A stretch of 64,000 bases of DNA from Oculina patagonica. Taxonomy: Eukaryota. Below, one piece after another: positions 1,008 to 62,603 of this stretch (positions are counted from its first letter, which is position 1; every line of letters starts with the position of its first letter). The notes below the pieces were generated by a model that made no database searches, had not been told where the DNA came from, and saw only the letters and a list, made by a program, of their open reading frames with translations. The stretch covers positions 46,252,001 to 46,316,000 of the forward strand of contig NC_135758.1 of assembly GCF_052425735.1 (NCBI RefSeq), read 5' to 3'. Position numbers and translations under genes: made by a program.

Positions 1008-2521
1008 TTAGAAGTCCTTTGGACGAATCTTCATCTCGGACCTCTTGACAGACTCACTGTTATTCTTCCAGTGTAACCAGCGCATTCCTCGGTCATCGTT
1101 CTTCCCATTGAGGTAAAAACCATTGAGGTTTACATAATGGCAAGCGTTGTACCACCAGCCGCCTTTATACACCAAGGCACAGTGGCGTGATGAGTCGACG
1201 TCATTATCGCGATCCTTGGTGGAAAATGCAGAGCCACGGTGATAAGCAAGAGAATCACCAGCAGTACCTAGGAAACGAAAACAATTAACTTTGTGTGAGC
1301 AAGTTTATTTTGTTTATCTGTTTGTACAGGCCGAGAGACAAAATTTTTCGAAACAAACTTGGGTGGCTTTTCTTCCAAAATAGGTAGATTTGCTGAAAAA
1401 ACGAAGGAAATATGACGTTTCGATACCGCAATTACGGCAAATGTAGTATATTTTCCAGCTCAAAATTTCATTTACAGAATTAATCAACTCAAACGTAACC
1501 TTTACAAAAGTACCGGCTTACCTGAATAACTTCCCAAATTCAGCTGATATTTCGCTCTCCCACTTGCTACAGAAAACGAGCTGTACTCTGCAAATGCTGT
1601 TTTACCATGGATGTCTTCCAAGTCAACGCGAAGCTTGTTACTGCTGCTTACAGTCAGGCGGTGGATCTTGTCTAGTCCGAGCCAAAACTCGCCGTTCAGA
1701 TTGCCGAAGCCTCGTTTGTAGTCATCCCAAGCTCGGAAGAAATCTACAGAGCCATCCCGTCTCTTCTGAAACACCGTCCATCCTCCACCGGCTGTTTTCT
1801 GATCACAGAAGACTTCAAATTCTCCCAAACCATCAGGATCGATTTTGTACACTCCACTGATCTTGTCACCGGACTTGTAAACTTCGGCACAGTTCTTGTA
1901 AACTGAAAATTGTATAATACAGTTAAGAAGTTATCTCTCCTGATCTTGAATCCTTTACTTTTCCTCGTCAATACCAAATTTTCCCCTCTCTATATTAGCT
2001 TGAAAGATAGCATATAGATTTTTTTTTTTATCTACTGATTTTCGATTGTTTAACATTTAACGTTTATTTTAAGTAAATGCAAGCAACGGAGCAATTGATC
2101 ATGAACACCGAGACAAAGGTCTAACCGAAGAAGTTAAAATAAAATGTTAAAAATCATAAATTGGTTGAAATTAATTGATGCTAAAGTTATACTTTAAAGA
2201 AGGAGAACATAGATACAAATATCGCAAGTTAAAAGTTTTAAAAAGTTGAAAGTTGAAATGTTTTTGTTACAAACCTTTTCCACCCGGGCCGCCAGTTTGG
2301 TTTTCCTTCATTTCCCTGATTTCTTGTTTTATTTCAGCCAGCTCTTGTTTTATTTCAGAAAACATGTTTTCGATTTTCTTAGAGTTTGATCCAGCGATGA
2401 AGTAATTGTTCTTGACAGTACACTGGGAATCTTCGGTGGGTGGCTTTGTCGGCAGATTTGAGTTTGCAAGCGCTGCTGTGAAATAACCCAACAGAAGAGC
2501 TTGGAAGAGATATTTCATCAT
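1008..2521 (-). CDS. Secreted fibrinogen-related domain (FReD/FBG) protein, copy 1; exons 2521-2275, 1902-1522, 1267-1008
   Basis: Exon 1 gives signal peptide MMKYLFQALLLGYFTAALA plus a coiled coil. Exon 2 (381 nt) gives VYKNCAEVY...[47 protein letters not shown]. Exon 3 gives GDSLAYHRGSAFSTKDRDND...GGWWYNACHYVNLNG...MKIRPKDF*. Both introns are GT-AG, phase 1, and the frame is preserved. Confidence 0.93.
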
Positions 2522-4606
2522 GGATCGATTTCTGGAACCTCCTTGTTAGAATGGACAGCTACAGGCAGTGAATGATTCAAGAAGACAAAAAAGCAGTTAA
2601 TATATCTGATCTTTGAGATTTTAAACAATACTTTATGCGTGTCAAATTCTATTTAGGAGCGCGCTCGACCATCACCAATCAAATATCTCCACATTTTCAA
2701 TTTGCGTGCCCAACGTCACTTACAGCTTAAGACTCCATGATGTTTAGAATTCATATATTTTACCAGCTTTAAAAAGACTTTTAAGTTAATCAAAGCTTCT
2801 GACTATTGTTTACGTATCGGGAAGAAAACGCACCAGTAATTGATTGAAAAAAACTCAGTAATGCAGTTCAGACACTTAAAAAGCCCATAAGGCCACTTAA
2901 TAGACACCTTCTGTCATTAACTGCTGATGAAATCGTGATACTCAGGATTGGTATGTTTTATCAGCTTTAAAGTTAATTAAGGCCTTTAAATTAAATATAT
3001 TATTACACAACAGAAAAAAGGGTCCTTTGATGACCGACATAATGTATTTGAGTCGCAACAAAACCTAGAAGTTTTCTTAACAGACAATTTACCTCAATAA
3101 CAGCAAATGAGATTGTGAGGTTTGGAATTAATTTATTTAAATCCAAACTTTCGGAGTATCCCACCACGGAATACGAAAAGGGTTTAACTTGACGTTTCAA
3201 AAACAGTAATGCAGGCTACATTAAACGACAAACGACCCCCCTTTAATTTTACTAACCGTAGCTATTGACACCTTACTTAACTAACAGCTAATGATTTCAT
3301 GATGTTTAGAGTTTGTATATTTTATCAGCTTTATAAAATTTTAAGATAATTAAACCTTTGACTATCGTATTTATTGGCGAATTAAAGACGACCAGTAATG
3401 CAGTCGAAATTATTAAAGAACATAAGGGCGATTACTAATCAGACACCTTGTTATTCCGCACGGGTTTTTGTTCCACTGGGTATTAAAGAAAACATTGGTT
3501 TTATCTAACATATTTTTTCTTCTAATAATTTCAATTTTCTGTAAAGATATTGTGAAAGCAACGCTTTGACGCTGCGATTAATTAAAACTGCCAGACTTCA
3601 CATTGAAGTTTTTTGATTTCGTAGCTGACATTAAACGTGATCGCTGTAAATCAGAACGTATCATACCTTTGTATATCCACCTTTCTTGCTATATCACGAA
3701 AAATATCAGTTGATATAACTAATGCCACGAGTACCTTTCCAGTTCGAAGAAAACAACCAGATAAGAAGCAGATAATTTTTCAAAATGTTCTCGACTTCAA
3801 ACAATTGGTGGAATCGAGTTAATTGGAATATTTAGCAATTATTTACCTAAGTGGCGCATATCCACCGCTTTTAAGCATTTATCAAACTTAAAGTGAAATG
3901 GCCGGCTTAAAAATTTATAGCTTTAATCGAATCATCGAAAAACAAAAAAATCTTTTTCAAAGGGGTTTCGACCGAAAACATCACGAGAAAAGTCGCATGG
4001 TAACATCAAACAATTGACCGAAAAATATTTGTTTTGAGTATTGAATGGATTTATGAAAGTGAAAGTTGTTTTTCTAATCGTTTTATTTCGTCATGGCTTA
4101 CAAGTTTTGTTATTACTGTTCCCTGGGCAATGGAGTGAAAATTGCAGTTCTGAAATCTGCCGCTAGAATCTGAGCCTTGAACAAGATGCAAAGAAGATCG
4201 TGAGAACCAAGGGAAAGAAAATCGAATGCTTGGCTGAACCTGACTTTTTTTTGATTTCCTGGAGAAAGAAGAAGAGCTAGAGATTTGGGAAACCACGAAA
4301 CATTTGACATTGATAAGGCGACCAGAATACTTTCAAACATAACTGGAGACGGAGATTAGTTTAGCGGAAATTTTCCAAATCGTATTCCTCGCCCACAGCT
4401 AAAAGCGTATATAAACACGAGAGGATAACGGCTTTATCCCCTCTTGATATAAAGTAGTGTTTCCCATGATAACGAAAAAATAGTGTAAATAGAAACTTTG
4501 GTCAATCATTGCAGTACCTTTCGGGAGAAATATAGTCATCGACAGAAAAAAGAGAATGTTGCTGTTTATCACTCTCTGTATTACGTTCTGCTATAGCGGT
4601 CACCTT

Positions 4607-4808
4607 TAGGGGTGTCGAATGGCCATGGTAAATGTGAGACTTTGCGAGACGGCGAGACTGTTATCTTTATTGCGAGTCAGAGACCTTTTTAAAAAGAAAT
4701 CGAGACTCCGCGACGACGTCAAAGAAAAATTTGAGACGACGAGACCCCTGAAATTTGGCTAAAATTTTGCGAGACAAGCATTTTTTGAAGGACCATTCCC
4801 CACCCCTA
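4607..4808. mobile_element. Small MITE-like element with GAGAC-rich interior
   Basis: Imperfect TIRs taggggtgtcgaatggcc / gaccattccccaccccta; repeated gagac motifs inside; no clear TSD. Confidence 0.45.
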
Positions 4809-7144
4809 CCTCTAATGACAGCTACGTAAACTTAAATGTGAACTGAAACCTAGTAGCTTGAGTTGCAGCTTCAAAGCATAATTTTTGAAGAAATTTTTGC
4901 TATCGAGATAAAAATAATTCAAGGGAAAATGAGTTTTAACCGTGTAACTATTAAGTATGCACAGAAAAACTGCTTACATTCAAGGTATCCATATTTTTGT
5001 TTTGAATTCTGCGGAATCCGTATTCAACTATGAAGGCTCAGTTTTTAGCGGCCATTCCAAAACTGCAATTCTCTCGCTCCAATCTAAATTAATTTCAGGG
5101 CCAGTAGTAAATTGAAAACCTGTTAACCGTGCATATTAACTAAAATGTTCAAAGTCGACGTACACTGTAAATTCCCTTTGAAATCGACATGGATTTTTAT
5201 GAATCCATTCAACATACCAAACTCGTCGATCGCCAAATGTTGTCAGGTGATTTTCCACGCTTTTCTCGGTCGCGCACACGAAGCATTCTCTTTTGAAAAT
5301 GATTTTTTTTTCGACAAAGAATAAAGCTATAATTTTAGGGCCGACTATTTCACTGGTTTGGTATATATCAAACATTCAAAGCAGATTTTATCTTCATTTC
5401 GGAGAAAAGTGGTGGATATCCACCACTATTAACCTCCACTTCGGCGAACAATTGCATTAATTAAGTATCCCAGATACCACCAACAATTGTTTCAAATCTA
5501 GAATGTTTTGAATATTATTTACTTTTTATTTCCCAACTTGTGCTCGAAGCACAAGTTCTCGCTCGTATGTAAGAGCGCATGGCAAATGCGGTTTTCTCGT
5601 GATATTGAAGAAAAAGCGGATTGAAATAATGTTAAGGAAAATATAGCCATCGAAAGGATGGAGAGAAAGTTGTTTTGCACTAATTAACACTAATTTACAT
5701 TACATCACTAATTTACAGCGATAGCGTTTATTGTCAGCTACGTAAACTTAAATGCATATGTGCCTTTATTGCATTCTCAAAAGGCACCGTTTCACGAAGC
5801 CTTTACTATGAAAGTGAAAATAATTCAAGAGAAAAAATAAGGTTAAAACATGTATGACTTTTAGTGTTCTGGAAACAAGAACTGGTGCAAGATTACTAGG
5901 TGGCTGATGAGTAACTTTATTCAGACACGATAAATTGGTCAGCAGAGCATGTGGGGTCGTGCAATTTTAACTAATTATATAATAAATAACTCGAAAAGGT
6001 TTAAATATATGTACATGATTTAAAGGCACCAAAACAGTTTACATTTTTTATTCGAGCTCTCAAGCAAGATAAATTTCTTTAGATATCTCCTCATTTCCAA
6101 TTTACTTGCCGAAAGTCGCTAACAGCTTAAGATTTCGTGATGTTTAGAATTCTTATATTTTACCAGCTTTAATTTAAAATTGCTTTTAAGATATCCAAAT
6201 CCTTGGATTTACTTCTACGCAATAGAAAAAACACATCAATTTGTGACTAGGAAAACCATTAATTCGGCGATGTTTGGACACGCACCAAAAGTGTTTATTG
6301 CCTTTATAGACTTAGTATAATTTTGCCTGCTTTAGTAACACTTTGAAGATAACTAAAAAAGAACATGAAAACGTTTTCTAACAAATAAGAGAAGACCACA
6401 TCACGCTGTTTTCTTTGAACCAATTAGGAGCCAAACCAAGACCAGTTGCAGTTGGAACCGGCTGATTGGTGAGTTTGATGATGCAAACATACTTGTTCTC
6501 AATAGTGGGAAGGAATAAACATTCTACGTGTTAGTTCGCGATGATTTTATTCTCAGACTCGACATATAAATTCTCCTTACTCTGGATTTCATTTATCCCT
6601 TTTTATTTTAAGGTTTCGATAAAACGCGCGCTCTGATTGGTTGAAAGAGCGTCCTTTATGAGAGTACCAAGGGGTCTGATTTTTGCTTCGGCATTTATCA
6701 CGTGCTTGATTGAACATTTTGCCTTCTGAGAAAATCAATGTTATGACACTTTGAGACAGTTACGCTGAACTTTAAGTAAATATGATAAATTTCATGAGCT
6801 ACCTAGGTAAAAACGTTTCAATCTTATGGATTGCACTAGAAAACTACAATGAACTAAACAGTGCATTACAAAATGCATGCGAAAGCACTGTTTAAACGTT
6901 TACAAAAACTTGACCTCTCAAATTTCTTATATTATGTCCCTTCTCGAGCACGCTCGAAATTTGAGGTTGTTTATAAAATGGAAAGTTCATAAAATTGTGC
7001 AGAATTACGGATTGTAATATTTTCTGGTTTTAAAACATTGCCAAGAAAACTAAGGCAAAAGCACCCTTACTTTACTTATTTTCCGGGGGATAGATACTTC
7101 ACTCCAGTGTGACATACAGCACGCGACACTGAATCTTCAAAATC

Positions 7145-7886
7145 TTAGAAGTCCTTTGGACGAATCTTCATCTCGGACCTCTTGACAGATTCACTTTTAT
7201 TTTTCCAGTGGTACCACGACATTCCTTTTGGGTCGGTTTTCCCATTGAGGTAGAATCCAATAAGGTTTGATTCATGACAGCTATTGTACCACCAGCCGCC
7301 TTTATAGGCTGAGGCACAGTGCAATGACCACTGGTCATTATCGCGATCTTTGGTGCTAAATGATGATCCACGTTGATAGGTGAGAGAATCGCCAGCGGTA
7401 CCTGAAAAAAAAAAAATTCAAAATAAACATGTGTCAATACTTTTATCTTTGTTTATCTGTTTGACCAAGGAACTAATTTTTCCGAAACACCGTAGGGCAT
7501 AAATGGCATTTCTTCCAAGAAAAGGGAATTGTCGAAAAAAAAAGTAAATATAATATTCAGATGTCACAATTAAATGTAGCACATTTCGCAGTGGCAAATT
7601 TCAACCATTCACAGAAGTAATAAAATCAAACTTATCAAAGGTAATGGCTCACCTGAATAACTTCCCAAACTCAACTGATATTTCGCTTTCTCACTTGCCA
7701 CTGAAAATGAGCTATACTCTGCAAATGCTGTGTTACCATGGATGTCTTCCAAGTCAACACGAAGCTTGTTACTGCTGCTTACAGTCAGGCGGTGAATCTT
7801 GTCGAGTCCGAGCCAAAACGTGCCATTCAGATTGCCGAAGCCTCGTTTGTAGTCATCCCAAGCTCGGAAGAAATGTACAGAGCCAT
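7145..7886 (-). pseudogene. FReD copy 2, 5'-truncated (exon 3 7401-7145; partial exon 2 7886-7653; exon 1 absent)
   Basis: Near-identical to copy 4 (22669-23415), including the intron and 3' flank. Homology stops abruptly at 7886 inside exon 2, and no exon 1 lies upstream. It carries NLNG>NLIG and YHRG>YQRG changes. Confidence 0.88.
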
Positions 7887-11452: not shown

Positions 11453-12747
11453 TTAGAAGTCCTTTGGACGAATCTTCATCTCGGACCTCTTGACAGACTC
11501 ATCGTTATTCTTCCAGTGGTACCAGCGCATTCCTCGGGTATCATCCTTCCCATTGAGGTACAAACCATTCAGGTTTGAGGAATGGCAACTGTTGTACCAC
11601 CAGCCGCCTTTATAAGACAAGGCACAGTTGGATGACCACTGGTCATTATCGCGATCTTTGGTGGTGAATGCTGAGCCACGGTGATAGGTAAGAGAATCGC
11701 CAGCGGTACCTGAGAAATGAAAAACAATTTAGCGTTAAATGGTGTAAATAAGTTAAATTCGTTGATCAGTTTGTACAGACCGAGGAATTAATTTTCCGAA
11801 ACAAACGTGGTTGGCGTTTTCCTTCAAGAAAGGTAATTGCCGAAAGTTCGAGGCAGCTGCAAACTTCATTCACAAAAAAATAATGTCAAACTTAACAAAG
11901 GTACTGGCTCACCTGAATAACTTCCCAAATTCAGCTGATATTTCGCTCTCTCACTTGTCACTGAAAACGAGCTGTACTCTGCAAATGCTGTTTTGCCATG
12001 GATGTCTTCCAAGTCAACGCGAAGCTTGTTACTGCTGCTTACAGTCAGGCGGTGGATCTTGTCGAGTCCGAGCCAAAACTCGCCGTTCAGATTGCCGAAG
12101 CCTCGTTTGTAGTCATCCCAAGCTCGGAAGAAATCTACAGAGCCATCCCGTCTCTTCTGAAAGACCGTCCATCCTCCACCGGCTGTTTTCTGATCACAGA
12201 AGACTTCAAATTCTCCCAAACCATCAGGATCGATTTTGTACACTCCACTGATCTTGTCACCGGACTTGTAAACTTCGGCACAGTTCTTGTAAACTGTAAA
12301 TTGTACATCAGTTTTAACATTTTAATAGAACCTGCTTTAGAGTCAAAAGCTTGCACTTAACAATAAAGCAGTTAAAACAACAGTATCTCGGACGACAAGA
12401 AATCACTGGAGTTTCAAAACGTTTTTATATTAGTACAAACCTTTTTCTCCCGGACCGCCAGTTTGATTTTCTTTACATTTCCCGATTTCCTGTTTCAATT
12501 CGGCCAGCTGTTGCTTCACTTCAGAAATCATGTTTTCTATTTTCTTGCAGTTTGGTCCAGCGAAGAAGCTGTTGTAATTGTGGTTGTTATTGACATTACA
12601 CTGGGAGAATTTCGGTGTCGTCAGCTTCCTCGTTGTCGACCATGACAGAAATGTTGGTGTCGTTGGCTTCCTCGTTGTCGACAGAAGTGAGTTTGCATGC
12701 ATCGCTACAAAAGAACTCATCAGGAGAGCTCGAAAGAAATACTTCAT
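11453..12747 (-). CDS. Secreted FReD protein, copy 3; exons 12747-12441, 12293-11913, 11709-11453
   Basis: Signal peptide [18 protein letters not shown], Thr/Pro-rich linker, coiled coil, 381-nt exon 2, and exon 3 [46 protein letters not shown]...KDF*. GT-AG introns, open frame. Confidence 0.93.
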
Positions 12748-12829
12748 TGTGGATCGACGCTTGTAAATATTCGTCAGTATAGAGCACCAACAGGCTACAA
12801 ACAGCGAATGAATCCACGAGACTCCAAAA

Positions 12830-12925
12830 GCCGTTTATATGATATGTTGTTTGAGCTTGCTCTTTCAAAATTCTATTTCAGGAGCACGTTTATCGCCAAT
12901 CAAATATCTCTACATTTTCCAATTA
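12830..12925 (-). promoter_or_regulatory. Putative proximal promoter (TATA-like ATATAAA plus CCAAT block) shared by FReD copies
   Basis: Minus-strand ATATAAAC ~90 nt upstream of the ATG, and a conserved ccaatcaaatatctc block. Equivalent motifs lie upstream of copies 1 (2595-2695), 4 (25523-25625) and 5 (29840-29925). Confidence 0.45.
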
Positions 12926-15193
12926 ACGTGTCGAACATCACGAACAGCAAATGAATTCCCGTTAATACGAATGAGTTTATTTTATCAGCTTTATTAAAGC
13001 TTTTAAGAAAACCAAGCGCTTTTTATTATCGCATCACGGAATAGAAAAAAGGAGCAGCTGATGACTGAAAAGAGCCCAGTAATGCAGTCACAATCCATTT
13101 TAAATCCCACGGTTGTCCATAAAACAAGACACCTCACGTCGTTAAAGGTTGATGAGTTCGTTGTGCTCAGAATTCGGTTATTTTGTCAGCTTTGTAAATG
13201 CTTTTAAGAGAACCAAAGCCTTTAATTACGAAATAGAAAAAAGGGATGAAAGCTGACCTCTCAAAAACGACCGGTAATGTTATGGAAACCCAGGACAATA
13301 CCCACATTTAAAGATTATTGCACCCAGTTATTTTGCACAAATTTTTGTTCACAACGGAGTAAAAATTCATACGTTTTCTTTTAACTTATGTTTCTTCAAT
13401 TTTTTTTCATTTGTATAAAGTGTGACGGAAAAAAGCTTTTATCCTTCGATAAAAGATGTCATAAGTTTACGTTAGCTGATAAATTTATACGTAGCTGATA
13501 TTAAACGCGATCGATATCATTTTTAACGTATCCTCATGTATCACAAAGACTGAAAAATACCCTTTAATAACTTTATAAATTGTTTTAAGATAACATGGCT
13601 TTCGAGTATGGAATAGGAAAAAGAAGTGTTGTGGTAACGTGCAGCTTTATTTTTAAGGATACTCGCTATAATCAGACAACTAGTTATTTAGTTATTTTGC
13701 ACAAGCTTTTGATTCTTGCACACTAAAAAGTCAAACGTTTTCTTTTAACGGTTTTTGCGTGATGATTTTCTGCTATTCAAAATTGTCTTATATTTTATTA
13801 CCTGTATAAAAGTCTTAATTAAAAAAAAAACTTATTTCGGAATAGAAAAAAGTGTTAATTGATGTCTTCTTTAATTTCGCTCAATCTATAACCATGATAA
13901 TTCGCAGCTACATTAACTGAAGCTAAATTAATCGAGACAGTATTTCAAGCAGTTGCCGCAAAAAGCGTTGTTGTCAGAAGAAATCTGCAACACCTTTCGT
14001 GTCCCAGAGCTCCCTCGGTATAACAATGGAATTGTCCGCTAGTGAGTTTGTTCAGATCTCCTCCGTTAGTTTCCTATCACCATATTTTTCTTATAGTTAT
14101 AAAATAATGTTCTTTGAATTCAAAACGTCACTAAGCTCGAGGTGGTGAAAATAAACTTGTGCTTCTCGGCCAACTGCATATATTTCTTCGCTTGTGAAAG
14201 AGACTGCTGCATTCAGATTCAATAATACTTATTATAAGAAATTAACGCTCGTGTTAAATAAGGTATTTAAAATGACTGCGACTTAAATTTACGTGATTTG
14301 GAAGGAAAATTACTCCTGAATAAATGAAATTGACGCGAATGAGGAGATAGTTTTTTAGAATTAAGGATATTAAGGCGATTAACACTTGAAAGCACAGTTT
14401 GTGACAACAAATGAACAAATTTAAGTTCAACAAAATAATCATAAGAAGTTGATGTGTAAGATATCCAGCTGCCCTTCTGAAAACAGGCATGAAATGGAAA
14501 TATCGTAGACAATATACCCGTAAAATATGTCTGAACGGGATCCAGAATTTAGGGTAATAAATATTAACGAAAATTAATGTCGCGGAAATTAACGCCGGCA
14601 AAAATCTTGAACGTGACTTAAATTAATGCAAATTTTTAAAATCCGCGTTAATTTCATAGAGCGTTAATTTCTTGTGATAAGGTAACTTACTTTTTTTAAA
14701 ACCTTCCAAAACTTAGCGGTTTGCGATTTTTTCCCCTCAAATTGAAGAAAAGTGTAAAGGAAAACTGTGGACAAGTATTGCAGTTCCTTTTCAGCAGAAT
14801 AAAAGCCACCGACAGAATTAGAGAATATCGTTTTTCACTCTCCAAGATTGTGACCCCATGATCCGTTCTGATTTACAACGCTCTCGTTTAATGGTAGCTA
14901 CAATTACGTTAACGTGAATGTGAAGTCTAGAAGCTTGAATTGCAGCGTCAAAGCGTATTTTTTTTAAAAAAAGTCTTTGCTGTCAAAATGAAAATATTTC
15001 GAGATAAAAAAGGAATTTAAATGTTTGACTCTTTAGCATGCGCGGAATAACTACTTACATTCAAGGAATTGCCATTGTTTTCTTTGGAACTCACAATCGT
15101 ATGCGGGATCCTGTTTAAACTATGAAGGCTCAGTTTTAAGCGGCCGTAGCACGTTTGAGAGCTTCAGTTTTCACTCCAATGTAAAACAAATTT

Positions 15194-15391
15194 ACGACAT
15201 TGCTGCTCCTAGCATTATGCAGGACGTGCATATCAACCTACTGAATGGCCTAGCTCACAACGAGTCTCTCGTAGCTTTGTTGGTTAGAGCGCCATACCGG
15301 TAACTGGGATGCCATGGGTTTGATTCCCGTCGGGGACTCAGATTTTTTCTTTGTCCCATGCTCGTATCATGTTGAATACTTCATCTTTATT
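15194..15391 (+). mobile_element. Second, more decayed copy of the tRNA-like repeat
   Basis: High similarity to 445-598, including the 5' leader aaccta.t.aatggcc.agctcacaac and the 3' tail. Absent from the paralogous segment at 32220-32385. Confidence 0.8.
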
Positions 15392-21310: not shown

Positions 21311-21879
21311 TTGTTAAATATTCTATGTCCCGGCAAAAGTTACAGTAAAATGTTTGGGACGGAACCCCGATATAACAATCTTCGATATAACGATATTCCC
21401 GATATAACGATGCGAATTTAGCAGACCGAACGTAAAATCTTTCCCGATATAACGATATTATCAGTACACAGTCACAAAACATCGAATTTAATACAATAAC
21501 ATTAGAGTAATCGAGTAATCTCTAACGTTTCTGTAAACAGACGGCACGATGATATACGAAATATCAGCGGGCATTACCCCGGAGAGAGTATGCTCGCAGG
21601 CTAGCATTTCGTGCGGTTTGAAGAACTTTCGGCTGATTTTTTTTAGGTCATGACAACGAATCTGCAAAATGACTGGCCTTCGATTAACGAGATTTTCAAG
21701 CCAATGAAGTGAATATGTCGATGAACTTTATTTTATATGTAAACCAGTTTAAACTAGTAAGCTAAGTTAGCGAACTGGACTTTCTTTCGAGTTACCGGTA
21801 AAACAAACTAAAGGGGAAAAACGAAGGAACTATCATTTCTTCGTTTTTATTTGCTTGCCTCACGACTGATTGGTTATAA

Positions 21880-38779: not shown

Positions 38780-39560
38780 CTTCATTCACTACATTGGCTA
38801 AATTCAGTATTTATTCACGAAATTAGATAGGCTCAGGATTTTTACTTCATTGGCTAAATTTACTACATTAGCTAAATTCACTATCTTCACTAAATTGGCT
38901 AAATTTACTATATTCACTACATTGGCTAAATTCACTATATTCCTCTCAATTGGCTAAATTCGTTATATTCACTTAATTGGCTAAATTCACTACATTCACT
39001 AAATTGGCTAAATTCACTATATTCACTAAAATGGCTAAATTCATTATATTCGTCTAAATTGGCTAAATTTACTATATTCACTAAATTGGTTTAATTCACT
39101 ATATTCACTAAATTGGCTAAATTCACTATATTCACTAAATTGGCTAAATTCACTAAATTGGCTTAATTCACTATATTCACTAAATTGGCTAAATTCACTA
39201 TATTCACTAAATTGGCTAAATTCACTATATTCACTACATTGGCTAAATTCACTATATTCACTACACTGGCCAAATTCACTATATTCACTTAATTGGCTAA
39301 ATTTACTATATTCACTACATTGGCTAAATTCACTATATTCACTACACTGGCCAAATTCACTATATTCACTTAATTGGCTAAATTCACTATATTCACTACA
39401 TTGGCTAAATTCACTATATTCACTACACTGGCCAAATTCACTATATTCACTTAATTGGCTAAATTTACTATATTAAATCACTAAATTGGCTAATTCACTA
39501 TATTCACTACATTGGCCAAATTCAATACATTCACTACATTGGCTAAATTAAATTCACTGC
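38780..39560. repeat. 27-bp minisatellite (aattggctaaattcactatattcacta)n inside the Helentron 3' region
   Basis: More than 20 tandem units read directly; scattered degenerate units continue to ~39895. Confidence 0.95.
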
Positions 39561-44177: not shown

Positions 44178-45543
44178 CTAATACCCATATCTGCCTTTAG
44201 GAAACAGAACTGGAAAGGCAAGCTCCTCACAATATCTGTCAGTCATTATAGACACGGGATGCTTGTTTTCTCCAGGAGCGATATCAAATATTTCATTTCC
44301 AGCTGAAGTAGTCCTGCCTTGCTCATCAGATATAATAGGGTAGTCTGGAATGATGGATTGAAGACAGGTTTCACATGTTGCTGCTCTGTGTTCGTTAATT
44401 GGGTCTTCCTTATCACAGTCGTCGGCATCATCCTCGCTTTTATCTTCACTGGTGAAAGGTGTACTTTGGTCATTGTTTGCGTTTTCTGATCCGGCGTGCT
44501 CGTTAAGTGAATGTTCCCTCTCACAATTGTCACCACTGTCGTCATAAATATCACTAGGTGATACGGTTCCATTTTGAGAACAATTTGTGGTGTTCGATCT
44601 ATTTTGTTCTTGGTGCGCACAAAAAAACGATAGTTCAGGATCAATGTTCTCAAGATTAATAGTTACATTTTCATACAACTCGTTATTACTTTTAAGCCAG
44701 TTGAGAGCATGCATTATGAGTTGTGGACGGACTGCCTGAAAGTAGACATGACCTCTGAATTGTAACTTCCGCTTTAGTTTTAACATGATAATCCCAGTAC
44801 TATCAGGTGGCCGTGGTAAAACTTTACATGTTTCCTCACAGGTCACTGGAACATTACAGATCGCTCCTTTAATTTTCCGTTGCTGACCTTTCGGCATCAC
44901 AATGAGTTTTTGAAACACTATTCGTTGTGAAATCAGAATTTGCTCGAGTTTTTCTAAAACCGCAAGCTCGCGTGGTACTTCATCGACTCCAAGGTTGTTG
45001 TGCACTGCTTGACATGGAGTTTTGTTTTTCTTTTTGATTGTATTATGACAAGTGTTACAAATATACATCTTTTCATTGAACGACTTCACACTTGTAAACA
45101 AACAGCAGCTGGAGTCGTATTTATCCTTTTTAAATTCCACAACAGTTTTTCTGTACAAAAGCCTATTGCAGACCACACAAATATAATAAGGGCCTTCCCT
45201 TATATCTCGATTGAATTGTTTAATATAGTAGTCCAGAGAATGTATAGATGAACGTTTTTCTTGCCTTAATTCTTTTTTTCTGGCTGCGCATTTTTTTACT
45301 AGGTCCTTCTTCTTACTAGAATCCATTAGTTTGTATTTTTCAGCTCTTTTGGTTTTTAGCGCCGTCTTTTCATCGAGATCCATAAGCCTGCATTTTTCAG
45401 CTCTTTTGGTTTTTAGCGCTGTCTTTTCATCGCTATCCATAAGCCTGTATTTTTCAGCTTTTTTAACACTTAGCGCTGTCTTTTCATCGCTATCCATAAG
45501 CCTGTATTTTTCAGCTTTTTTAGCACTTACCGCCTTTTTTTTT
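44178..45543 (-). CDS. Helentron polyprotein, middle part: 19-aa repeats, C4 zinc finger, pre-Rep conserved region
   Basis: CVVCNRLLY...YICNTC; QRKIKGAICNVP; LKLKRKLQFRGHVYFQAVRP; ends EELAFPVLFPKGRYGY*. It joins the upstream ORF if one A is removed from the A9 run at 45535-45543. Confidence 0.85.
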
Positions 45544-45612
45544 ATCGAGTTCCATGTTTGCGTACTTTGAGGCGTAATAATCTAAGCAAGCTCGTTTCTT
45601 GGCTGGTTCCAT
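45270..45612 (-). repeat. Coding 57-bp (19-aa) tandem repeat
   Basis: MDSDEKTALSVKKAEKYRL-type units; atccat recurs at 45321, 45378, 45435 and 45492. Confidence 0.9.
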
Positions 45613-47427
45613 AGCAGCATAGCTTTCCCTTCTATCTTTGGCAAGTTTCTGCTTTTGCTTTGCTGACACATGCCTTCTTAATACAGTCTGGCGGTCTTTG
45701 CTTGATAGCTCACAATTGCACTTAACGAAATGTATTTCGTATGCTTTCACATCTAACGTTGTTTTATCTGCTATCATTCTGAGAAGAAGTTCAATTGCAC
45801 TTGTTATGTTCTTGACTTTCTCATAATCATGACCTTTCAATTTGCTATTGTTGAGACCAAATAGATTGTAACATGTATTCCCTTTACAATCTCTTTTAAA
45901 AATGCAGCAAACATAGCATTTTAACGCGGACATTAAAAAGCCGGTATTGTGTTCTTGGTTTTCTGCAATAACTTTTTTCATTTCTTGGATAAAGCATAAA
46001 GACTGTTGTTCTGTTTTTCTTATTTTGTATGCAACACTTAAATGTGCCTCGATGATTGCAATGTCTATTGCAAGTGAATTTGGAAGATCAGAGGCCGTGC
46101 AATGTTCTTTTAACATGAGCTTTTCTTGCAGCCGATTACAATTTTCAATTATGGCATCAAATGTATTTTCATTCCAATAACTAATTTGCTTTAAGACGGA
46201 GAAGCAAATTGCATAAAAACAAATAAAACAGCACTGCTTACAAGAGCAATAAGTGTCACTGTTTCGTACACTTTCTTGACCTATTTCAGTTTTACTTAAA
46301 TTCTCAAACTGCACTGGTCCAGAGATTTCGGGCGTCGTTATACTAACACCTTCGGTCACTTCTGTTAATATCTGGACGCCTTTCAATTCATAAAGGGCAT
46401 CTTTTATTAATATGTGCAAGTTTTTAAAATACTGGACAAGATGGTCAAGAGAAGCTATTTCAATTAGCACACAGGTACCACAGGGATCAGACATTCCTTT
46501 AGAATCACGGCTATGCGAGTCAAAGACTTTAAATGTACCGTCCTTTGTTATAAAAATGGCTACGGTGGAGATCGTTATTGTGAGAATAAACGATTTGAAG
46601 TTTTCTCCAATTAACAGATCAAAGGCGTCTAGTAGGGGTCGACAATGAACATCTTCTGTTGCACAGTCATATAAGTTATGTACAGTACCAAAATAGCTGT
46701 CACTGTATCGCATGCTATACATGGTTTCTCTTAGACACAACACTTCAGGTAATTCCGTCAACATCAAGCGATCCTGTGCTACTGACGTTGAAAGGTGTGT
46801 GTATAACTCATTACCAATGGTCATTATTTCTACAAGGTCTGAGGAGGATCTTACGGAATAGATGAAGCTGTACAATATTGCTGTCAAGCTCATTGCCACA
46901 CACTGATTTCCTGCATTTGAACCAAAAACTGAACTATTTCCTTGACTGTATGGAGCATGAATGGTTTTGGTAGGATCTACTACAAACGGGCCAGGATTTG
47001 TCTCTATATCCCCAGAAAGCTTACTAACAATATTGTTTATTCTGTGATTTACATTTTTGTACACCAGTTTATTCCGTGATGGCAAAATTTTACAGCCATT
47101 TCTCAAAGGGTATTTTTCAGTAACTGTAAACTCATTGCCTTCCGATATACGTTTGCCATTGGCAAATGCAACCCTTTTGCGCAGTGAGGGTGTTTGAATG
47201 ATGTGATAGAGTTTTGATGACTTGGGAACATTCTTTAATACATATTTTCGCATTATTTTCCTAAGTTTTCTCTTTCTTAAAGCCCGTTTCAATTGTTTTA
47301 CAGGCAGCCTACTTGGTTCTGCACAGCGTCTTTTTTTCCCATTCTTTTGGCTGTCAACACTATTAACAAACAATGCAAAGCGAGATCTAGATGATGTTTC
47401 TTTTATTATCTTCATTGCGTCAAGCAT
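45520..47427 (-). CDS. Helentron polyprotein, N-terminal part: basic leader, 2A-like motif, viral-tegument-like deubiquitinase (VTD, peptidase C76-like) and degenerate second VTD
   Basis: LSGDIETNPGP (DIETNPGP = aa 140-147); SQGNSSVFGSNAGNQCVAMSL (Cys176) and VFDSHSRD (Asp303/His305); second unit KQCCFICFYAICFS..ISYWNENTFDAIIEN. Confidence 0.8.
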   Translation of the reverse strand: MLDAMKIIKETSSRSRFALFVNSVDSQKNGKKRRCAEPSRLPVKQLKRALRKRKLRKIMRKYVLKNVPKSSKLYHIIQTPSLRKRVAFANGKRISEGNEFTVTEKYPLRNGCKILPSRNKLVYKNVNHRINNIVSKLSGDIETNPGPFVVDPTKTIHAPYSQGNSSVFGSNAGNQCVAMSLTAILYSFIYSVRSSSDLVEIMTIGNELYTHLSTSVAQDRLMLTELPEVLCLRETMYSMRYSDSYFGTVHNLYDCATEDVHCRPLLDAFDLLIGENFKSFILTITISTVAIFITKDGTFKVFDSHSRDSKGMSDPCGTCVLIEIASLDHLVQYFKNLHILIKDALYELKGVQILTEVTEGVSITTPEISGPVQFENLSKTEIGQESVRNSDTYCSCKQCCFICFYAICFSVLKQISYWNENTFDAIIENCNRLQEKLMLKEHCTASDLPNSLAIDIAIIEAHLSVAYKIRKTEQQSLCFIQEMKKVIAENQEHNTGFLMSALKCYVCCIFKRDCKGNTCYNLFGLNNSKLKGHDYEKVKNITSAIELLLRMIADKTTLDVKAYEIHFVKCNCELSSKDRQTVLRRHVSAKQKQKLAKDRRESYAAMEPAKKRACLDYYASKYANMELDKKKGGKC

Positions 47428-53161: not shown

Positions 53162-53416
53162 GTATAAACGTTATATAACAATTATTTTTATGCGTGAGTA
53201 TCTCAAATGAGATATGACACAACTAGTCGAAAATGTGAGTGGTTCAGCCCATGAAGGCAACGTTTAAGTCTTTCACAGTCTAAAGCGTTTGAATTCTTCC
53301 ATGATATGTTCGAACAACAATGCCCAGGATAAACCTTCTACTCATAACCTAAACGATTTGTTTTCGCGACAATCTATTGCGTTAGTCACGCTAAACACGA
53401 GTAAAGCGGCGCTAAT

Positions 53417-54122
53417 ATTCAATCTAACCTGACCTGTGACACTGAAAACCTCATCTACATAATTCAATGTAACCGCTGTAATTTACAATACATAGGAGAA
53501 ACTAAACGACGTTTAAAAGACCGATTTAATGAACACCGCCGTACCATAGATAACCCCAACAGTAAATCTAAACCCACTACAGCCGCACAACATTTCACTT
53601 CCTCGCCTAACCACACTGCTAATGACATACAATTAATCCCCATCGAAAAAGTCTTCTCTAACCGAGACTCAATCCGTAAGGCCAGGGAAGCTTTTTTAAT
53701 TCTAAAAGGCAGAACACTTGTTCCCGATGGCCTTAACATACGCGAAGAAACCTATTAGTTTGTTTACTTATATTATTATGTTGTCATTTTTTAAGCTTAG
53801 CATATTTTAAATTTTTTGTTTTATACTAGCACACTGTTTACATATTTCCTGTATTTAGTTTTACGTATTTCCGGTATTTCGTAAGATATCATTATCACCA
53901 TATAAATTTAAACATAGCCAATGTAAACTTCATTGTACCTGAAGAAGGCTGGTTTGGCCAGCCGAAATATAGTACAAGACTAACTCTCTCATTCTACGTT
54001 GTATCGGTCTCTGCTTCTTCAATTTCAGTTTTCTATGTGTCAAACCGATTAGATCACTCAGTTGATCCAACGTATACCGGTAGGAGATCGTACACGGTTT
54101 GCTTGCTTGAACTTTTAATAGT
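53417..54122 (+). mobile_element. 5'-truncated Penelope-like element: GIY-YIG endonuclease remnant (53417-53758) plus 3' region
   Basis: Manual translation LTCDTENLIYIIQCNRCNLQYIGETKRRLKDRFNEHRR...HF...RKAREAFLILKGRTLVPDGLNIREETY*. A 13-bp direct repeat cgctaatattcaa at 53410-53422 and 54123-54135 brackets it. Confidence 0.9.
53933..53977 (+). ncRNA. Minimal type I hammerhead ribozyme of the Penelope-like element
   Basis: Stem I TTGTAC/GTACAA; core CTGAAGA(A); stem II GGCTGG-TTTGG-CCAGCC; GAAA; palindromic minimal stem III ATAT. Predicted cleavage after A53971. Confidence 0.8.
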
Positions 54123-56513: not shown

Positions 56514-56554
56514 TGAGTCTGTTTTTTATTTAACAATTAGATTATGAGCTCGAG

Positions 56555-59500
56555 CAAACAAGCAAAAGTCATCGGAAGAACTCTGAAAATTGAAAACGCT
56601 AAATATTCAATCGACAACGTGCCAAAGGAACTACTTGAGTGAGTTTATTAGTTTATTATAATACTATTTGTCTTAATCGTCATTAATTCCGGATAAGGGC
56701 GCACTCAGGGTTGCTATAGCCAATGTTGGTTTAAGTCTGCTTAGTTAGGAGGATTTCGAAGTTGATGGAAATTGCTTTACTACCTTTCTGAATTGCTCAG
56801 GAGAAATCAAAATTCACAAACCCGAAAATGCTAATCACACTTCTTAGTTCTATTGTTATATATGTGTCTAGTCCCTCGTGTCTTTTTTCTTTATTGTATG
56901 CATACTTATTTATATTGTTTGGTCTTTACGCACTCAATTTCACGACTTTTTTTTCTCTAAGTTATTCAATGATAATAATATAGACGTAGGGTTAATATCT
57001 CTCAATGTGAGAGGATTACGCGAGTATAGGAAATCTAATAAGATATTCAACTGGGTGGCAAAACACGGTGGAAATCGAGGAATCGCATTTCTTCAAGAGA
57101 TTCATTCGATATTGAGACGGAATGGTCCCAAAGATATAAAGGCGAAATAATCATGTCTCATGGAACGTCAAATAGTAAAGGTGTCGCTATTTTATTTGGT
57201 GAACAACTAGACTATAGCATCGTTAAGAAAATTATTGACCAAAATGGCTGATTTATCCTCGCTTTGTGCCTGTTGCAAGGCAACTCCTTTCTACTAATAA
57301 ATTCTTACGCACCCAATGATGAAAAAAATCAAGTATCGCTTGTGTTAGAGATATGCGTAGTAATCAACAACCTTGACTGCCCAGTAGATACCTCTTTTAT
57401 CTGGGGCGGCGACTTCAACTTTATCTTCGATATAGAGCTGGAAGCAAGCGGTGGGAATCCAAAATTAAAAACTCACTCGATCGAAGCTATTCTGGAAATT
57501 ATGCTAGATCTGGATCTGTGCGATATATGGAGGGTCAGAAACCCGGACGCCAAAAAATTCACCTGGAGCGGCAAAGGGCAAGGACGAAGCAGCTCCTTAA
57601 ACATAACCATATATAGGCGTTTAGATTATTTCTTAATTTCTGACGAACTTCAATCATATATCGAACAAGTAGATATCATTCCGGCCCCGTCCACCGATCA
57701 TTCTGCGATTACTTTGCGTATTAAATCATTGCCCGGGGTTAAAAACGGTCCATCATTTTGGAAATTCAACAACTCTCTCATTAACGACAGCAACTATATT
57801 GGAGAAATGAAAAATGTAATAAACAACTGCAAAGTAAAAATGGATTCTGAAGGAATTGTAAATCCTCAGCTGCGATGGGACTTGTTGAAATATGAAATTC
57901 GCAAATCAACAATAACATTCTCAAAAGCACGTGCAAAAACATTCAGGAATGAATACCGAGATATCGAGGAAAAGATTAAGAAAATCGAAAGCTTTCACGG
58001 GTGGGAACATGACCCTGTTAAAACCGCCGAGCACGACAAATTAAAAAAGTCTTTGGAAGATAAAAGCAATTACATCACGGAAGGAATAATCATAAGATCC
58101 AAAGTGAACTGGTATGAGCAGGGTGAAAAAAATACAAAATATTTTTTATCACTGGAAAAGCGTAATAAGGCCAAAACATATACTTTATCAGTTTTCAGTA
58201 TCTTTAATTTTTGAAGAAAACTCAGCTTTTTTAATAAAATATCCGATAAGCGAACGTTGTTACTATATTTGCATCTATGCCAGAATCCGGCCGCTGGTAG
58301 TACGTTCTCTAAGGTGCCAAAAAGGGCAGAATAGTAATGTCATTTCACGCAATAAATAGGATAAGTAATAACAGCTACATTTGTTGTAAACTGATTTGTT
58401 GGCTTGTCGTTGTTTGGTTTTGCTAGCTTGATTATTTCTGTCGATAAGGACTCTTCAATGTTACTTGTAAAAATCACATTAGTTATGCATAAATTAAATT
58501 TCTCATCTTTCATTGTAGTTCAAATATCGCAAAAAAAGACGAGGTTCCAATACTCCGATTCACGGTGACTTTTAGTATGTTATTCCTCAATATATGCAAA
58601 GTCGAATAAGGCATGTTTTATTTTTGTTGCAATTTGTTTTGGGTTAGGCAACGAAATGGCTTGTATTGACTGGACTACAAGGCTGGAAAACGCTAATGAA
58701 GGACGCCGACGCTTTTGAGGATCACGATCCCTCAAACCCCGGTAGAAATGACACTGCTTCCAAAATAACATCAAAAGACGTATACCTTTCGTTTGTTCAA
58801 TCAAAATATAAAAAACCTACTGCCCAATCTCATTTCCTGAAACGGGTCGATGGCCAAATTGACTGGGAATCCGTCTATCGTAGAATATATAACATGTCTA
58901 TTGATCTTTACACAAGATGTTTTCAATATAAAATCCTTAACAATTGCCTTTATTTAAACAGGGACCTATTCCGCTTCAAGATCATCGAATCTCCTATTTG
59001 TTCCTTCTGTTCTATTTATTCAGAAACAATCGATCACCTTTTTGTCCATTGTGAGCACTCTAAATCCCTGTATAGGGACATAAGAATTTGGACTAAATCT
59101 GCCGGAATTGTTTTGCCAGAATTGAATATCTCAAATATTATATTAGGTAAAGACTCTGAAAAAAACAGCGCTATAATAAACCTTATTCTTACAGTGTTCA
59201 AACTTTTAATATATAAGTCTAGATCTGGTGGCCAAATGCCAAGTGTACAACGTTTCATAAATGAACTCAACTTTTATGAAAAAATAGAAAGAAATATTGC
59301 CAGGAAACGAGATAAGCTTGCGTGTCATTTTAAGAAATGGTCTAATCTAGTATCTATTTTGTGAGATATTTAAACCCCTTATCTTTCCTTTATAAAAGCT
59401 TCCTGTATAAGTAGCGTAGAGACCACTCTTTGTTGTTTGTTTTGTATGGCACAAACTTGTAATGTAGTTTATGTAGATTAGGTTAATTTGATTTTAGTTA

Positions 59501-61119: not shown

Positions 61120-61781
61120 GGACGTTCGCGCTAATTGTTTATGCGCATCCTTACTGAGCACGTAATTCATGTCGCAACGGCACGCCACGTCATGCATGAT
61201 CGCGCGCGTTTATAAATCGTTCCAAACACATACAGGGTGGGTAGCCGTTGTGTTAACTTCGCTTGTAGTTTGATTCCTTAAATGGTCGGTGACCCCCATT
61301 TTTCCGGGATAAATAACCTTTTGGGATAAATCTTTACCGATTGACAAAAAATGAGCCAAATTCGAATGTTAGAAGTTTATTATTTTTCAATTTTTTTCCC
61401 GCGCGCGGTCGAATTAGTCACATTTTGCAGCATTTCGCTGTTTTGAACGTTTGCAAATCTAATTCTTAAAGACAAGGTTTACTCTAAGGGACTTTAAAAG
61501 TGAAATGTATTCGTTCAATTAACCAAATTAAATAAATTGGGACAAATGAAATGGGCCTGCAGGATTTCATTAAAAATATTTTGTTGCCAGAAGCCGCAGA
61601 GGTCATATCGAGTCACGAAATCAAATTTATCCAAATAAGCATCTTCTTTCAGATATCATATACTGAAAACGAATTCGGTGACCCCCAATGTTTTTACATT
61701 TCTGCATAAGTAACCTGTAAGCTAGCAGTGGTGAAAGTTAAAGAAAAATTGCAATGTTGGAAGATTCTCGCGCGAACGTCC
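61120..61781. mobile_element. TTAA-flanked MITE (Kolobok-like)
   Basis: TTAA-GGACGTTCGCGC ... GCGCGAACGTCC-TTAA. Confidence 0.8.
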
Positions 61782-62349
61782 TTAAATGATCTTCACTTTA
61801 GAAATTCAGTCATTAACAAACAAGGTTGTCTAAGAGAATATTTTCCCAGTTATTATTATTTTTTATTATTTTGCACCCCAAATTTCTTTACACATACACC
61901 TTGAAAACAATTTTTTCTATATATTCGTTTTAACAGCAACGGCTGATGTAATATATATGAGGATCACGTTAAGTTTAGATTTATGTCATGTTTTAGAGTT
62001 GATCTAGATGCTTTAATTATTTGGCAGTCGAGTAATTTTTCGATTTTTAAAAGAAATAAAGGTAAGCAATCACAAGGCTACAACTAATTTCAAACTGGCA
62101 ATGCCAAAAAAGAAAAGAAAAAAGAAATTATTTCTCTTCCTTTGTGTAGGTTGCTCAGTAACCGTCTTTTTATAGAGAGCCACAGGTTCATCAGCCCTGC
62201 TGTTAAGTGCGAGATTACAAACGAATATTCTGGTTGTTTTAAAATATCAGTGCCAAGGAAACAACATACAGCAAAAGCACCCTTACATATTTATGTTTTT
62301 AATAAATAATTTACTCCAGCGTAACACAAAGTTAGCGACAGCTGTGAAT

Positions 62350-62603
62350 CTAGAAGTCCTTTGGACGAATCTTCATCTCGGACCTCTTGACAGACACACC
62401 GTTATTCCAGTGGTACCAGCGCATTCCTCGAGAATCGGTCTTACCCGGCAGGTACATGCCATTGAGGTTTGAGTAATAGCAACTCTTGTACCACCAGGCC
62501 CCTTTAAATAGTAAGGCACAGTGTGATGACCAGTCGTCATTATCGCGATCTTTGGTTGAAAAAGCAAATCCACGATGATAGGTGAGAGAATCACCAGCAG
62601 TTC
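62350..62603 (-). CDS. Last exon of FReD copy 6 (upstream exons presumably beyond the window)
   Basis: Acceptor tttccag|GA ACT GCT, then [46 protein letters not shown]...KDF*. The 3' flank is homologous to that of the other copies. Confidence 0.85.

Follow-up and report, generated by a model that had tools for sequence, protein, structure and literature searches.

A 64-kb stretch of the genome of the coral Oculina patagonica (CM126635.1:46,252,001-46,316,000 in assembly GCA_052425735.1; hereafter called the window) carries six copies of a gene for a fibrinogen-related domain (FReD), all on the minus strand, and we propose, with a probability of roughly 0.7, that these copies belong to a germline repertoire of FReD proteins that have a common body and P-domain loops under diversifying selection. 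In this proposal, the tandemly arranged three-exon genes would encode small secreted proteins, with exon 1 contributing an N-terminus that resembles a signal peptide, followed by a short linker and a single coiled-coil-like module as a stalk, exon 2 the A and B subdomains, and exon 3 the P subdomain, which has an Asp-x-Asp Ca2+ site, a conserved disulfide and the ligand-binding surface known from FIBCD1, M-ficolin and tachylectin-5A (TL5A). About 15-18% of the exon-3 codons would evolve at a nonsynonymous-to-synonymous rate ratio (omega) of 2.5-3.6, located in three loops which, by homology, line the extended S1 site and the Ca2+ loop, with the scaffold and the C-terminal strand being held under strong purifying selection. 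Concerted evolution by unequal recombination or gene conversion would homogenize the gene body, i.e. the 5' halves, exon 2 and, in the window, the last 42 coding bases, and the P-domain loops would escape from it. The outcome would probably be oligomeric recognition proteins with many different binding surfaces for microbial, symbiont or other non-self surfaces; the selection signal and its mapping are shown below, and ligand class, oligomerization and a role in immunity are what we infer here.

A first-pass annotation of this DNA had located the variation among the copies in three slots of exon 3, which follow the motifs DND, WWY and YLxG. All slot strings that it gave are indeed present in the window, and its outer coordinates (1008-62603) exactly match the exon 3 span of our splice models. 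Across the six copies, 17 of the 22 slot columns are variable as compared with 15 of 63 columns elsewhere (Fisher p=1.8e-5), and the three slots are hypervariable in all relatives, too. There are five distinct slot versions, because copies 2 and 4 share identical slots; over the whole of exon 3, these two copies differ by two nonsynonymous and no synonymous changes. In copy 3, slot 1 (Q23-Y32; 11612-11641, minus strand) corresponds to FIBCD1 residues 396-405, which include the Ca2+ loop, the first Cys and the Tyr405 equivalent, slot 2 (N39-S44; 11576-11593, minus strand) corresponds to Arg412-Ser417 with the X-Cys pair and the His415 equivalent, and slot 3 (K54-R58; 11534-11548, minus strand) is homologous to the Tyr431/Ala432 loop, being two residues shorter.

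Relatives were collected by matching DNA to a degenerate pattern that encodes the C-terminal peptide, which yielded 42 metagenome and metatranscriptome contigs with members of the same subfamily. The six window copies and 25 distinct relatives, all with intact open exon-3 frames, were combined in a 31-sequence codon alignment, and codon models were run in our own code, which reproduces the iqtree M0 likelihood exactly (-3553.14). For this set, the log likelihood was -3245.3 under M1a and -3205.5 under M2a, which assigns 15.5% of codons to omega 2.96 (likelihood ratio test (LRT) 79.6, p=5e-18), whereas M8 puts 16% of codons at omega 2.5 (LRT 70.5 for M7/M8 and 58.5 for M8a/M8); with another tree and all gap columns removed, LRTs of 80-86 and the same sites were obtained. 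Nineteen distinct O. patagonica exon-3 paralogs, a set overlapping with the first in the six window copies, gave an LRT of 62.7 (p=2.5e-14) with 17.8% of codons at omega 3.6. By contrast, exon 2 of 15 of these 19 genes, used as a control in the same M1a/M2a comparison, showed no selected class (LRT 0.27, p=0.87). In a per-site test with site-specific synonymous rates, the nonsynonymous rate exceeds the synonymous rate (beta>alpha) at alignment columns 25, 43, 62, 69 and 75 (p 0.002-0.044), and scaffold codons come out as strongly purifying. Furthermore, a set of Ca2+-carbonyl and S1 positions, defined a priori from the structure papers on FIBCD1 and leaving out Cys, has an omega of 2.03 (p=0.004), and between transcripts of the close relatives L014, L017, L021 and L033 the ratio of nonsynonymous (dN) to synonymous (dS) divergence over the whole of exon 3 is 1.0-1.5. 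In pairwise comparisons within the window, dS is 0.07-0.18 and dN/dS 0.10-0.28 for exon 2, dS is 0.25-0.72 and dN/dS 0.20-0.53 for exon 3, and slot dN is 0.27-0.66; a slot-only Nei-Gojobori dN/dS was dropped, since with about 12 synonymous sites, which are saturated, the ratios are uninformative.

Where these sites lie in the folded domain can be read from solved relatives. Exon 3 matches positions 138-221 of the Pfam profile PF00147 (Fibrinogen_C; E=7e-28 to 3e-23 for copies 3, 5 and 6) and therefore is the P subdomain, in agreement with the first-pass annotation, with exon 2 covering profile positions 2-129 (E=2e-49; cut-off 22 bits). An AlphaFold2 model of the family member L003, which is not a window copy but belongs to the same subfamily, was built from a diverse 91-sequence alignment (predicted local distance difference test (pLDDT) 97.3, predicted template modelling (pTM) score 0.93). 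Foldseek aligns this model with FIBCD1 (4m7f) at a template modelling (TM) score of 0.96 and a root-mean-square deviation (rmsd) of 1.1 Å, with L- and M-ficolin at an rmsd of 0.9 Å and with TL5A (1jc9) at TM 0.97, and its sequence identity to FIBCD1, M-ficolin and TL5A is 44-53%. Superposition at 0.9-1.1 Å makes a mapping by homology reasonable, and this was done by alignment to the FIBCD1 chain together with published contact lists. Starting from T374 of FIBCD1 (residue 1 of exon 3) and reaching past Cys414, the window copies align without gaps, except for copy 1, whose Ca2+ loop is one residue longer. The Ca2+ ligands D20 and D22 (equivalent to Asp393 and Asp395) and the Cys-Cys disulfide pair (Cys401-Cys414 in FIBCD1) with its 13-residue spacing are present in all six copies.

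In FIBCD1, the Ca2+ site is formed by Asp393, Asp395 and the carbonyls of Ser397 and Asn399, a disulfide connects Cys401 and Cys414, and there is a cis-peptide at Asn413-Cys414, as there is at Arg218-Cys219 in TL5A; subsite S1(1) consists of the backbone NH of Cys414 and His415 along with Tyr405, Tyr431, Ala432 and Trp443, S1(2) of the Asn413 backbone with His382 as a base, and S1(3) of the side chains of His396 and Arg412 and the N of Glu398 (PMC3908420, PMC10825690). In the exon-3 numbering of copy 3, the selected sites are W24 (equivalent to Ser397 of FIBCD1), S26 (Asn399), S31 (residue 404), Y32 (Tyr405), S40 (Asn413; P=1.0, fixed effects likelihood (FEL) p=0.004), S43 (Thr416), D55-R58 (the Tyr431/Ala432 loop; P≥0.99 for T57 and R58, FEL p=0.002 for R58), R61 (Glu436) and D69 (Gln444), with S25 (Glu398) and Q23 (His396) near threshold, and the equivalent of His382, His9, is kept in 29 of the 31 sequences. 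The alignment supports a placement of the selected sites in the FIBCD1-equivalent Ca2+ loop and extended S1 glycan site, and by this homology mapping the variable residues do not lie away from the pocket, which the first-pass annotation had named as a possible refutation.

The pocket itself is unusual, though not quite as initially described. The 'Cys-His cis-peptide' attributed to this protein family has to be corrected, since the cis-peptides of FIBCD1 and TL5A are both of the X-Cys type. It is true that the His following the second Cys is missing from copies 5 (C-A) and 6 (C-Y), and so is the Tyr four residues past the first Cys: the Tyr405 and His415 equivalents are both found in copies 1-4 and are replaced by Leu and Ala, respectively, in copy 5 and by Phe and Tyr in copy 6. 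The lack of a canonical pocket is not confined to these two copies, however, because all six are devoid of equivalents of Tyr431, Ala432 and Trp443, and copies 5 and 6 would represent further departures from a canonical pocket rather than the sole ones. In FIBCD1, Tyr431-Ala432 contacts the acetamide N and provides the pocket floor (PMC3908420); in the alignment this motif is absent from each of the six window copies, because their loop G-K-x-x-x-x-G is two residues shorter than the G-A-H-A-S-Y-A-D-G of FIBCD1. It is also shorter than that of M-ficolin, and a broader coral FReD consensus retains the longer loop. At the position of Trp443 there is no aromatic residue: the six window copies have N/K/N/K/T/N, and across the entire family this column holds N, S, M, K, T, R or A. 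Among the 31 sequences, a Tyr405 equivalent occurs in 12 and a His415 equivalent in 17, with the latter column otherwise containing Tyr (six), Ala (five) and one each of Gln, Trp and Ser. As no copy has the complete set of canonical pocket residues, the subfamily is not a canonical acetyl-binding FReD, and the incomplete pocket in all copies suggests that these proteins probably bind something other than simply acetylated sugars. The specificities for different glycans or microbes that were first envisaged are putative.

The gene body shows a different mode of evolution. Among copies 1, 3, 4 and 5, exon 2 has a nucleotide identity of 93-100%, with flanking introns that are 20-80% identical or cannot be aligned. 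Between copies 1 and 3, this identity reaches 98-100%, and both flanks are much more diverged than the exon-2 dS of 0.065, which indicates a conversion tract. Copies 2 and 4 share a 1.5-kb duplicate (6354-7886 corresponding to 21877-23415, 92% identity), copies 3 and 5 share a 3.4-kb 5' block (11907-15197 versus 28967-32228, 88.7%) which ends at the 3' end of exon 2, and copy 3 has a 3' block in common with copy 1 (77% identity). Trees of exons 2 and 3 are incongruent (approximately unbiased (AU) test, p=0.039 and 0.017), and in 99% of 105 same-gene pairs, drawn from 15 O. patagonica genes in the window and the loci L044-L051, exon-3 dS exceeds exon-2 dS (medians 0.474 and 0.176, median ratio 2.7). 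With paralogs that are chimeric and have a homogenized exon 2, recombination or gene conversion is indicated alongside selection. The lower dS of exon 2 is most simply explained by gene conversion of this exon, but constraint on its synonymous sites or a higher mutation rate of exon 3 may be an alternative to concerted evolution of the gene body. Inside exon 3, the pairwise homoplasy index (PHI) test, with p=0.98 for the 31 sequences and borderline values (p=0.05-0.06) for two same-genome sets, neither proves nor rules out conversion.

Homogenization also seems to extend to the very end of the coding region. The last 14 residues (11456-11497, minus strand, in copy 3) had been described as invariant, which is true for the protein in all copies but does not reflect protein constraint alone, because every nucleotide of these 14 codons (42 bases) is identical in six of six copies as well, with the 3' untranslated region diverging right after the stop codon. 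This complete lack of synonymous differences in the window is improbable in view of the synonymous divergence elsewhere in exon 3 (LRT 19.0, p=1.3e-5; LRT 14.9 with the family-wide rate) and indicates homogenization in addition to protein constraint. Across the family, the C-terminus is likewise invariant as a protein, with 20 nucleotide versions among the metagenome matches, an omega of 0.01 and a near-normal synonymous rate, and this family-wide invariance is classical purifying selection. The exact window version of the 42-bp end is found in 8 of 19 copies in the wider O. patagonica cluster.

An obvious question is whether adaptation has to be invoked at all, as the loops could also be the unconstrained surface of old paralogs and their contrast to the surroundings a product of conversion of exon 2 and the 3' end. 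A number of observations weigh against our proposal in this respect. In the six window copies alone, M1a/M2a is not significant (p=0.06, with 37% of codons at omega 1), but site models on these six copies are underpowered, and neutral models are rejected with LRTs of 58-86 in the two overlapping larger sets. The inference of diversifying selection on exon 3, made initially for the window, is in this sense partly supported: it does not hold for the six copies by themselves and holds for the 31 members and the 19 paralogs, i.e. once relatives are added. Similarly, an elevated dN/dS was expected in the slots, and when these are taken whole, omega is 0.97 (0.23 outside the slots) and pairwise slot dN/dS is 1.2 at most; yet particular positions within the slots are selected, the estimated omega of the selected class is 2.5-3.6 and not 1, and the a priori site set reaches 2.0 with p=0.004. 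Likewise, the columns equivalent to His415 and Trp443 belong to the class with omega~1 and not to the selected one, and exon 2 and the C-terminal block have less synonymous change than their surroundings, but dN equals or exceeds dS over the whole exon 3 of close paralogs and the same test is negative on exon 2. All in all, we consider an origin without adaptive diversification quite unlikely. As to an artefactual site-model signal, caused by recombination, multi-nucleotide mutation, misalignment of loop indels or an admixture of pseudogenes, recombination can inflate such tests, the paralogs are demonstrably chimeric between exons and PHI on exon 3 in the same-genome sets is borderline (p=0.05-0.06); nevertheless, PHI on the 31-sequence set gave p=0.98, and removing gaps and changing the tree left the LRT at 80-86 and the sites unchanged. 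Copy 2 is truncated and several metagenome contigs have a frame-broken exon 3, but only intact open frames were analysed, copies 1 and 3 match annotated proteins, related genes are transcribed and spliced, and scaffold codons in the very same sequences are under strong purifying selection, unlike those of pseudogenes. Also to be counted on the critical side are the raised synonymous rates of several hypervariable codons, which could stem from multi-nucleotide changes or small conversion tracts, the mere five sites that pass the per-site test allowing for site-specific synonymous rates, the mixture of species and paralogs among the metagenome sequences, and branch lengths that were fixed to the M0/nucleotide tree with one scale factor, where PAML re-optimizes them. 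Overall, an artefact seems very improbable to us. Least probable of all appears a dedicated diversification of exon 3, either by cassette-like conversion, for which diverse exon-3 copies, including the truncated copy 2, would act as donors onto a homogenized 5' gene body, or by locally raised and possibly somatic mutation, although the higher dS of exon 3 than of exon 2, the raised synonymous rates of hypervariable codons and the chimera breakpoints at the border of exon 2 and intron 2 are compatible with it.

A separate issue, which touches the ligand class only and is compatible with the selection result, is whether the variable surface binds proteins, such as host receptors, allorecognition partners or prey/venom targets, in the way tenascin and angiopoietin FReDs do, with the loops reflecting protein-protein co-evolution. 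Among solved structures, exon 3 is closest in sequence to the FReDs of tenascin-R and tenascin-C (E=9e-28), which are shortened at the Tyr431 loop, too (by three residues compared with the coral relative P0264), and which have been crystallized with a fibronectin domain of PTPRZ; tenascin-type EGF or FN3 repeats, however, were not found with Pfam in the coral genes. NCBI names relatives 'ryncolin-like' after a snake-venom FReD, and with no equivalents of Tyr431, Ala432 and Trp443, the residues that define acetyl-binding FReDs are largely absent. Apart from the missing repeats, these points favour protein partners, whereas the conserved Ca2+ ligands, disulfide, cis-peptide-Cys spacing and His382 equivalent are features of lectin-type FReDs, and the selected sites coincide with the glycan subsites S1(1)-S1(3) of FIBCD1. 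Protein ligands seem somewhat unlikely on this evidence, but remain a candidate.

In comparison with known systems, the coral genes share with FIBCD1, M-ficolin and TL5A the fold, the Asp-x-Asp Ca2+ site and the 13-spaced disulfide, and the FIBCD1 positions 396-399, 404-405 and 412-416 and the 431 loop are just where the coral family varies and is selected. Unlike these proteins, the coral copies lack Tyr431-Ala432, have N, K or T at the Trp443/Tyr position and have lost the His415 and Tyr405 equivalents in two cases (copies 5 and 6), as have many relatives; moreover, they feature neither the collagen stalk of ficolins nor the transmembrane segment of FIBCD1, but a short coiled-coil-like module instead. 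Judged by their sequences, the coral genes would work most like lectin-type FReDs, while failing two defining pocket features. Tenascin-R and tenascin-C, besides being the best exon-3 match among solved structures, also have the shortened loop after YLxG, but tenascins are giant EGF/FN3 matrix proteins of single-copy genes, whereas the coral genes encode stand-alone FReDs of about 300 residues with hypervariable loops in a tandem arrangement. Three other identities were rejected: ficolins, as exon 1 has no Pfam collagen match and just G-G-P-G-E/G-K before the FReD; snail-type FREPs, as there is no immunoglobulin superfamily (IgSF) and no Pfam domain in the approximately 85-100 residues upstream of the FReD; and orthology to MFAP4, as the integrin-binding RGD is absent from the four full models and tenascin, FIBCD1, ficolins and TL5A all come before MFAP4 structures in searches by sequence and by fold. 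Copy 1 received the name 'MFAP4-like' automatically, on grounds of similarity.

Published work on the FREPs of Biomphalaria, the FREP/FBN proteins of Anopheles and oyster FReDs describes hypervariation as well as gene conversion and positive selection (PMC12074976, PMC7588048, PMC4346834). These snail, mosquito and oyster families likewise are large, tandem, lineage-specific expansions of secreted FReDs linked to immune recognition; the coral proteins differ from snail FREPs by the absence of IgSF domains, and from all these invertebrate families by their cnidarian host and by the pattern of one whole exon being kept diverse next to a homogenized one. In the same coral genus, positive selection was shown for Oculina tachylectin-2 (Hayes, Eytan & Hellberg 2010; PMC2880987), whose unrelated, non-FReD fold was modelled on horseshoe-crab tachylectin-2 and for which allelic variation at a single locus was reported, in contrast to the paralog diversification in a tandem array seen here (PMC2880987). 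In the literature searched, which was not exhaustive, we found no account of this coral FReD subfamily or its exon-wise mosaic. Nevertheless, molluscs, insects and vertebrate ficolins already provide examples of such systems, and the coral subfamily extends this knowledge without opening new ground.

Corals, which to our knowledge have no adaptive immunity, must tell apart pathogens, commensals and algal symbionts, and O. patagonica is a classic model of bacterial bleaching. For such a host, an FReD cluster of several hundred kilobases with selected loops is a concrete candidate for a recognition repertoire, and exon-3 positions 24, 26, 31, 32, 40, 43, 55-58, 61 and 69 provide a list of residues for binding and mutagenesis studies. 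The contrast between the exons also illustrates how a multigene family can keep its scaffold uniform and its binding surface diverse, at synonymous as well as nonsynonymous sites.

The gene models underlying these analyses were derived by tblastn with flanking open frames and inspection of splice sites in the window, which is AT-rich (37% G+C), contains no N and overlaps with locus L045. The 14-residue C-terminal peptide plus stop occurs six times, every time on the minus strand, as do all exons listed below. The genes consist of three exons of 247-307 nt, 381 nt and 254-260 nt (stop included), with GT-AG borders and phase 1 at each junction, and the four complete copies, i.e. copy 1 (2521-1008), copy 3 (12747-11453), copy 4 (25437-22669) and copy 5 (29754-28372), encode proteins of 295-314 residues, about 85-100 of which precede the FReD. 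In copy 1, exon 1 (2275-2521; signal-peptide-like N-terminus, linker and one coiled-coil-like module) runs from ATG to a GT donor, exon 2 (1522-1902; A and B subdomains) has AG/GT borders with phase 1 at both ends, and exon 3 (1008-1267; P subdomain with stop) has an AG acceptor and an open frame to the stop, with the C-terminal half of Fibrinogen_C matching the paralogous exon; the spliced model is 100% identical over 295 residues to the NCBI protein P0285 ('MFAP4-like', O. patagonica). Copy 3 comprises exon 1 (12441-12747, defined by splice sites and located within the 3.4-kb block shared with copy 5), exon 2 (11913-12293, splice sites and the Fibrinogen_C match at E=2e-49) and exon 3 (11453-11709, splice sites, Pfam and the match to P0279), with the model being 100% identical over 314 residues to P0279 (ACROYT_G003987). 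For copy 4, tblastn and splice sites define exon 1 (25170-25437, followed by an intron 1 of 1.6 kb), splice sites exon 2 (23182-23562) and a GT-AG splice model exon 3 (22669-22925), and splice sites likewise define exon 1 (29448-29754), exon 2 (28973-29353) and, together with Pfam, exon 3 (28372-28628; C-A-H, Leu at the Tyr405 position) of copy 5. Copy 2 is truncated at its 5' end and retains exon 3 (7145-7401, nearly identical to copy 4 and within the 1.5-kb duplicate) and the 3' part of exon 2 (7653-7886, where homology to copy 4 ends at 7886; tblastn covers exon-2 residues 60-138); it probably is a pseudogene, because the 5' half of exon 2 and exon 1 are missing. From copy 6, the window contains exon 3 (62350-62603; Pfam match; C-Y-Y, Phe at the Tyr405 position), which is identical to exon 3 of P0294 (ACROYT_G003992, 293 residues, gene spanning 2.9 kb in L045). 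The position of this identical exon at L045:18234, together with the record range of L045, gives the chromosomal coordinates of the window. The copy 6 gene starts about 1.2 kb past the window end, with exons 1 and 2 outside, and tblastn found no exon 2 of copy 6 in 62604-64000. Spliced transcripts of relatives have the same exon junctions and therefore support these gene models. Long open frames lie antisense to exon 2 at 1447-1857, 11766-12248 and 29058-29600, all on the plus strand, and the simplest view is that they are not genes but result from exon 2 being so extremely conserved.

According to the neighbouring loci that were fetched, the subfamily extends over at least 46.008-46.394 Mb, i.e. 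a cluster of at least 385 kb, with outliers at 40.47 and 48.27 Mb as well as on a different chromosome. A representative search with exon 2 pointed to scleractinian corals. The window's own proteins were recovered when a metatranscript of the same subfamily served as the seed of a protein search, whereas an Oculina protein of a different FReD subfamily used as a seed retrieved only proteins of 57-66% identity and missed the window genes. At L047 (CM126635.1:46,134,893-46,156,844), very large annotated mosaic genes, which combine a C-type lectin with many EGF domains and Fibrinogen_C, adjoin small stand-alone FReD genes. L001, a contig from a related coral (ENA ERZ25067556, 9712-10565), has exons 1 and 2, the latter being 90% identical in nucleotides to that of the window, but no exon 3 within 10 kb downstream; it represents either a 5' half that has been orphaned or a gene whose intron is very long, and it was left out of the exon-3 analysis. 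Irregular copies occur on contigs that include L005, L023, L031 and L036, in L032 a Tyr replaces the first Cys of the P-domain disulfide, and in several metagenome contigs the 5' part of exon 3 is out of frame; broken or decaying copies therefore coexist with intact ones in other corals, in line with the truncated copy 2 here.

Exon 1, for which a profile search with the paralogous exon 1 sequences found no Pfam family, starts with a hydrophobic segment, continues with a linker and closes with a heptad-like module whose last residues are G-G-P-G-x-K, which we infer from reading the sequence to be a putative signal peptide and coiled coil. In copies 3 and 5, it contains a duplicated Thr/Pro-rich unit of 13 residues, which copies 1 and 4 lack and which might resemble a mucin-type O-glycosylated linker. 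The related transcripts L012, L014, L017 and L021 (metatranscriptome contigs) have between one and about five tandem heptad-like modules of about 33 residues (..KQQLAEIKQEIRALKENQTGG..), whereas the window genes have one; stalk length is therefore a second variable feature of the family, probably arising by duplication of phase-1 exons.

Between copies 5 and 6, no FReD exon was found in the region of 30-62 kb, which seems to consist mostly of repeats. Within the lectin cluster, a Helitron-like transposon (39989-47427, minus strand) has three long intact open reading frames (ORFs), with ORF 1 (1413 residues) containing Helitron_like_N, a PIF1 helicase and an endonuclease-like tail, ORF 2 (439 residues) containing DUF6570 and ORF 3 (635 residues) weakly matching a herpesvirus tegument N-terminal domain (PF04843); since its frames are unbroken, the sequence suggests that the element is young and possibly active. 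A tandem array of about 700 bp (38854-39549; 27-nt unit, about 26 copies, 85% matches) adjoins the 3' end of the Helitron-like ORFs, and a GIY-YIG nuclease ORF as well as ORFs with a reverse-transcriptase zinc-binding domain (53405-53755 and 57264-59361, plus strand) are fragments of other mobile elements.

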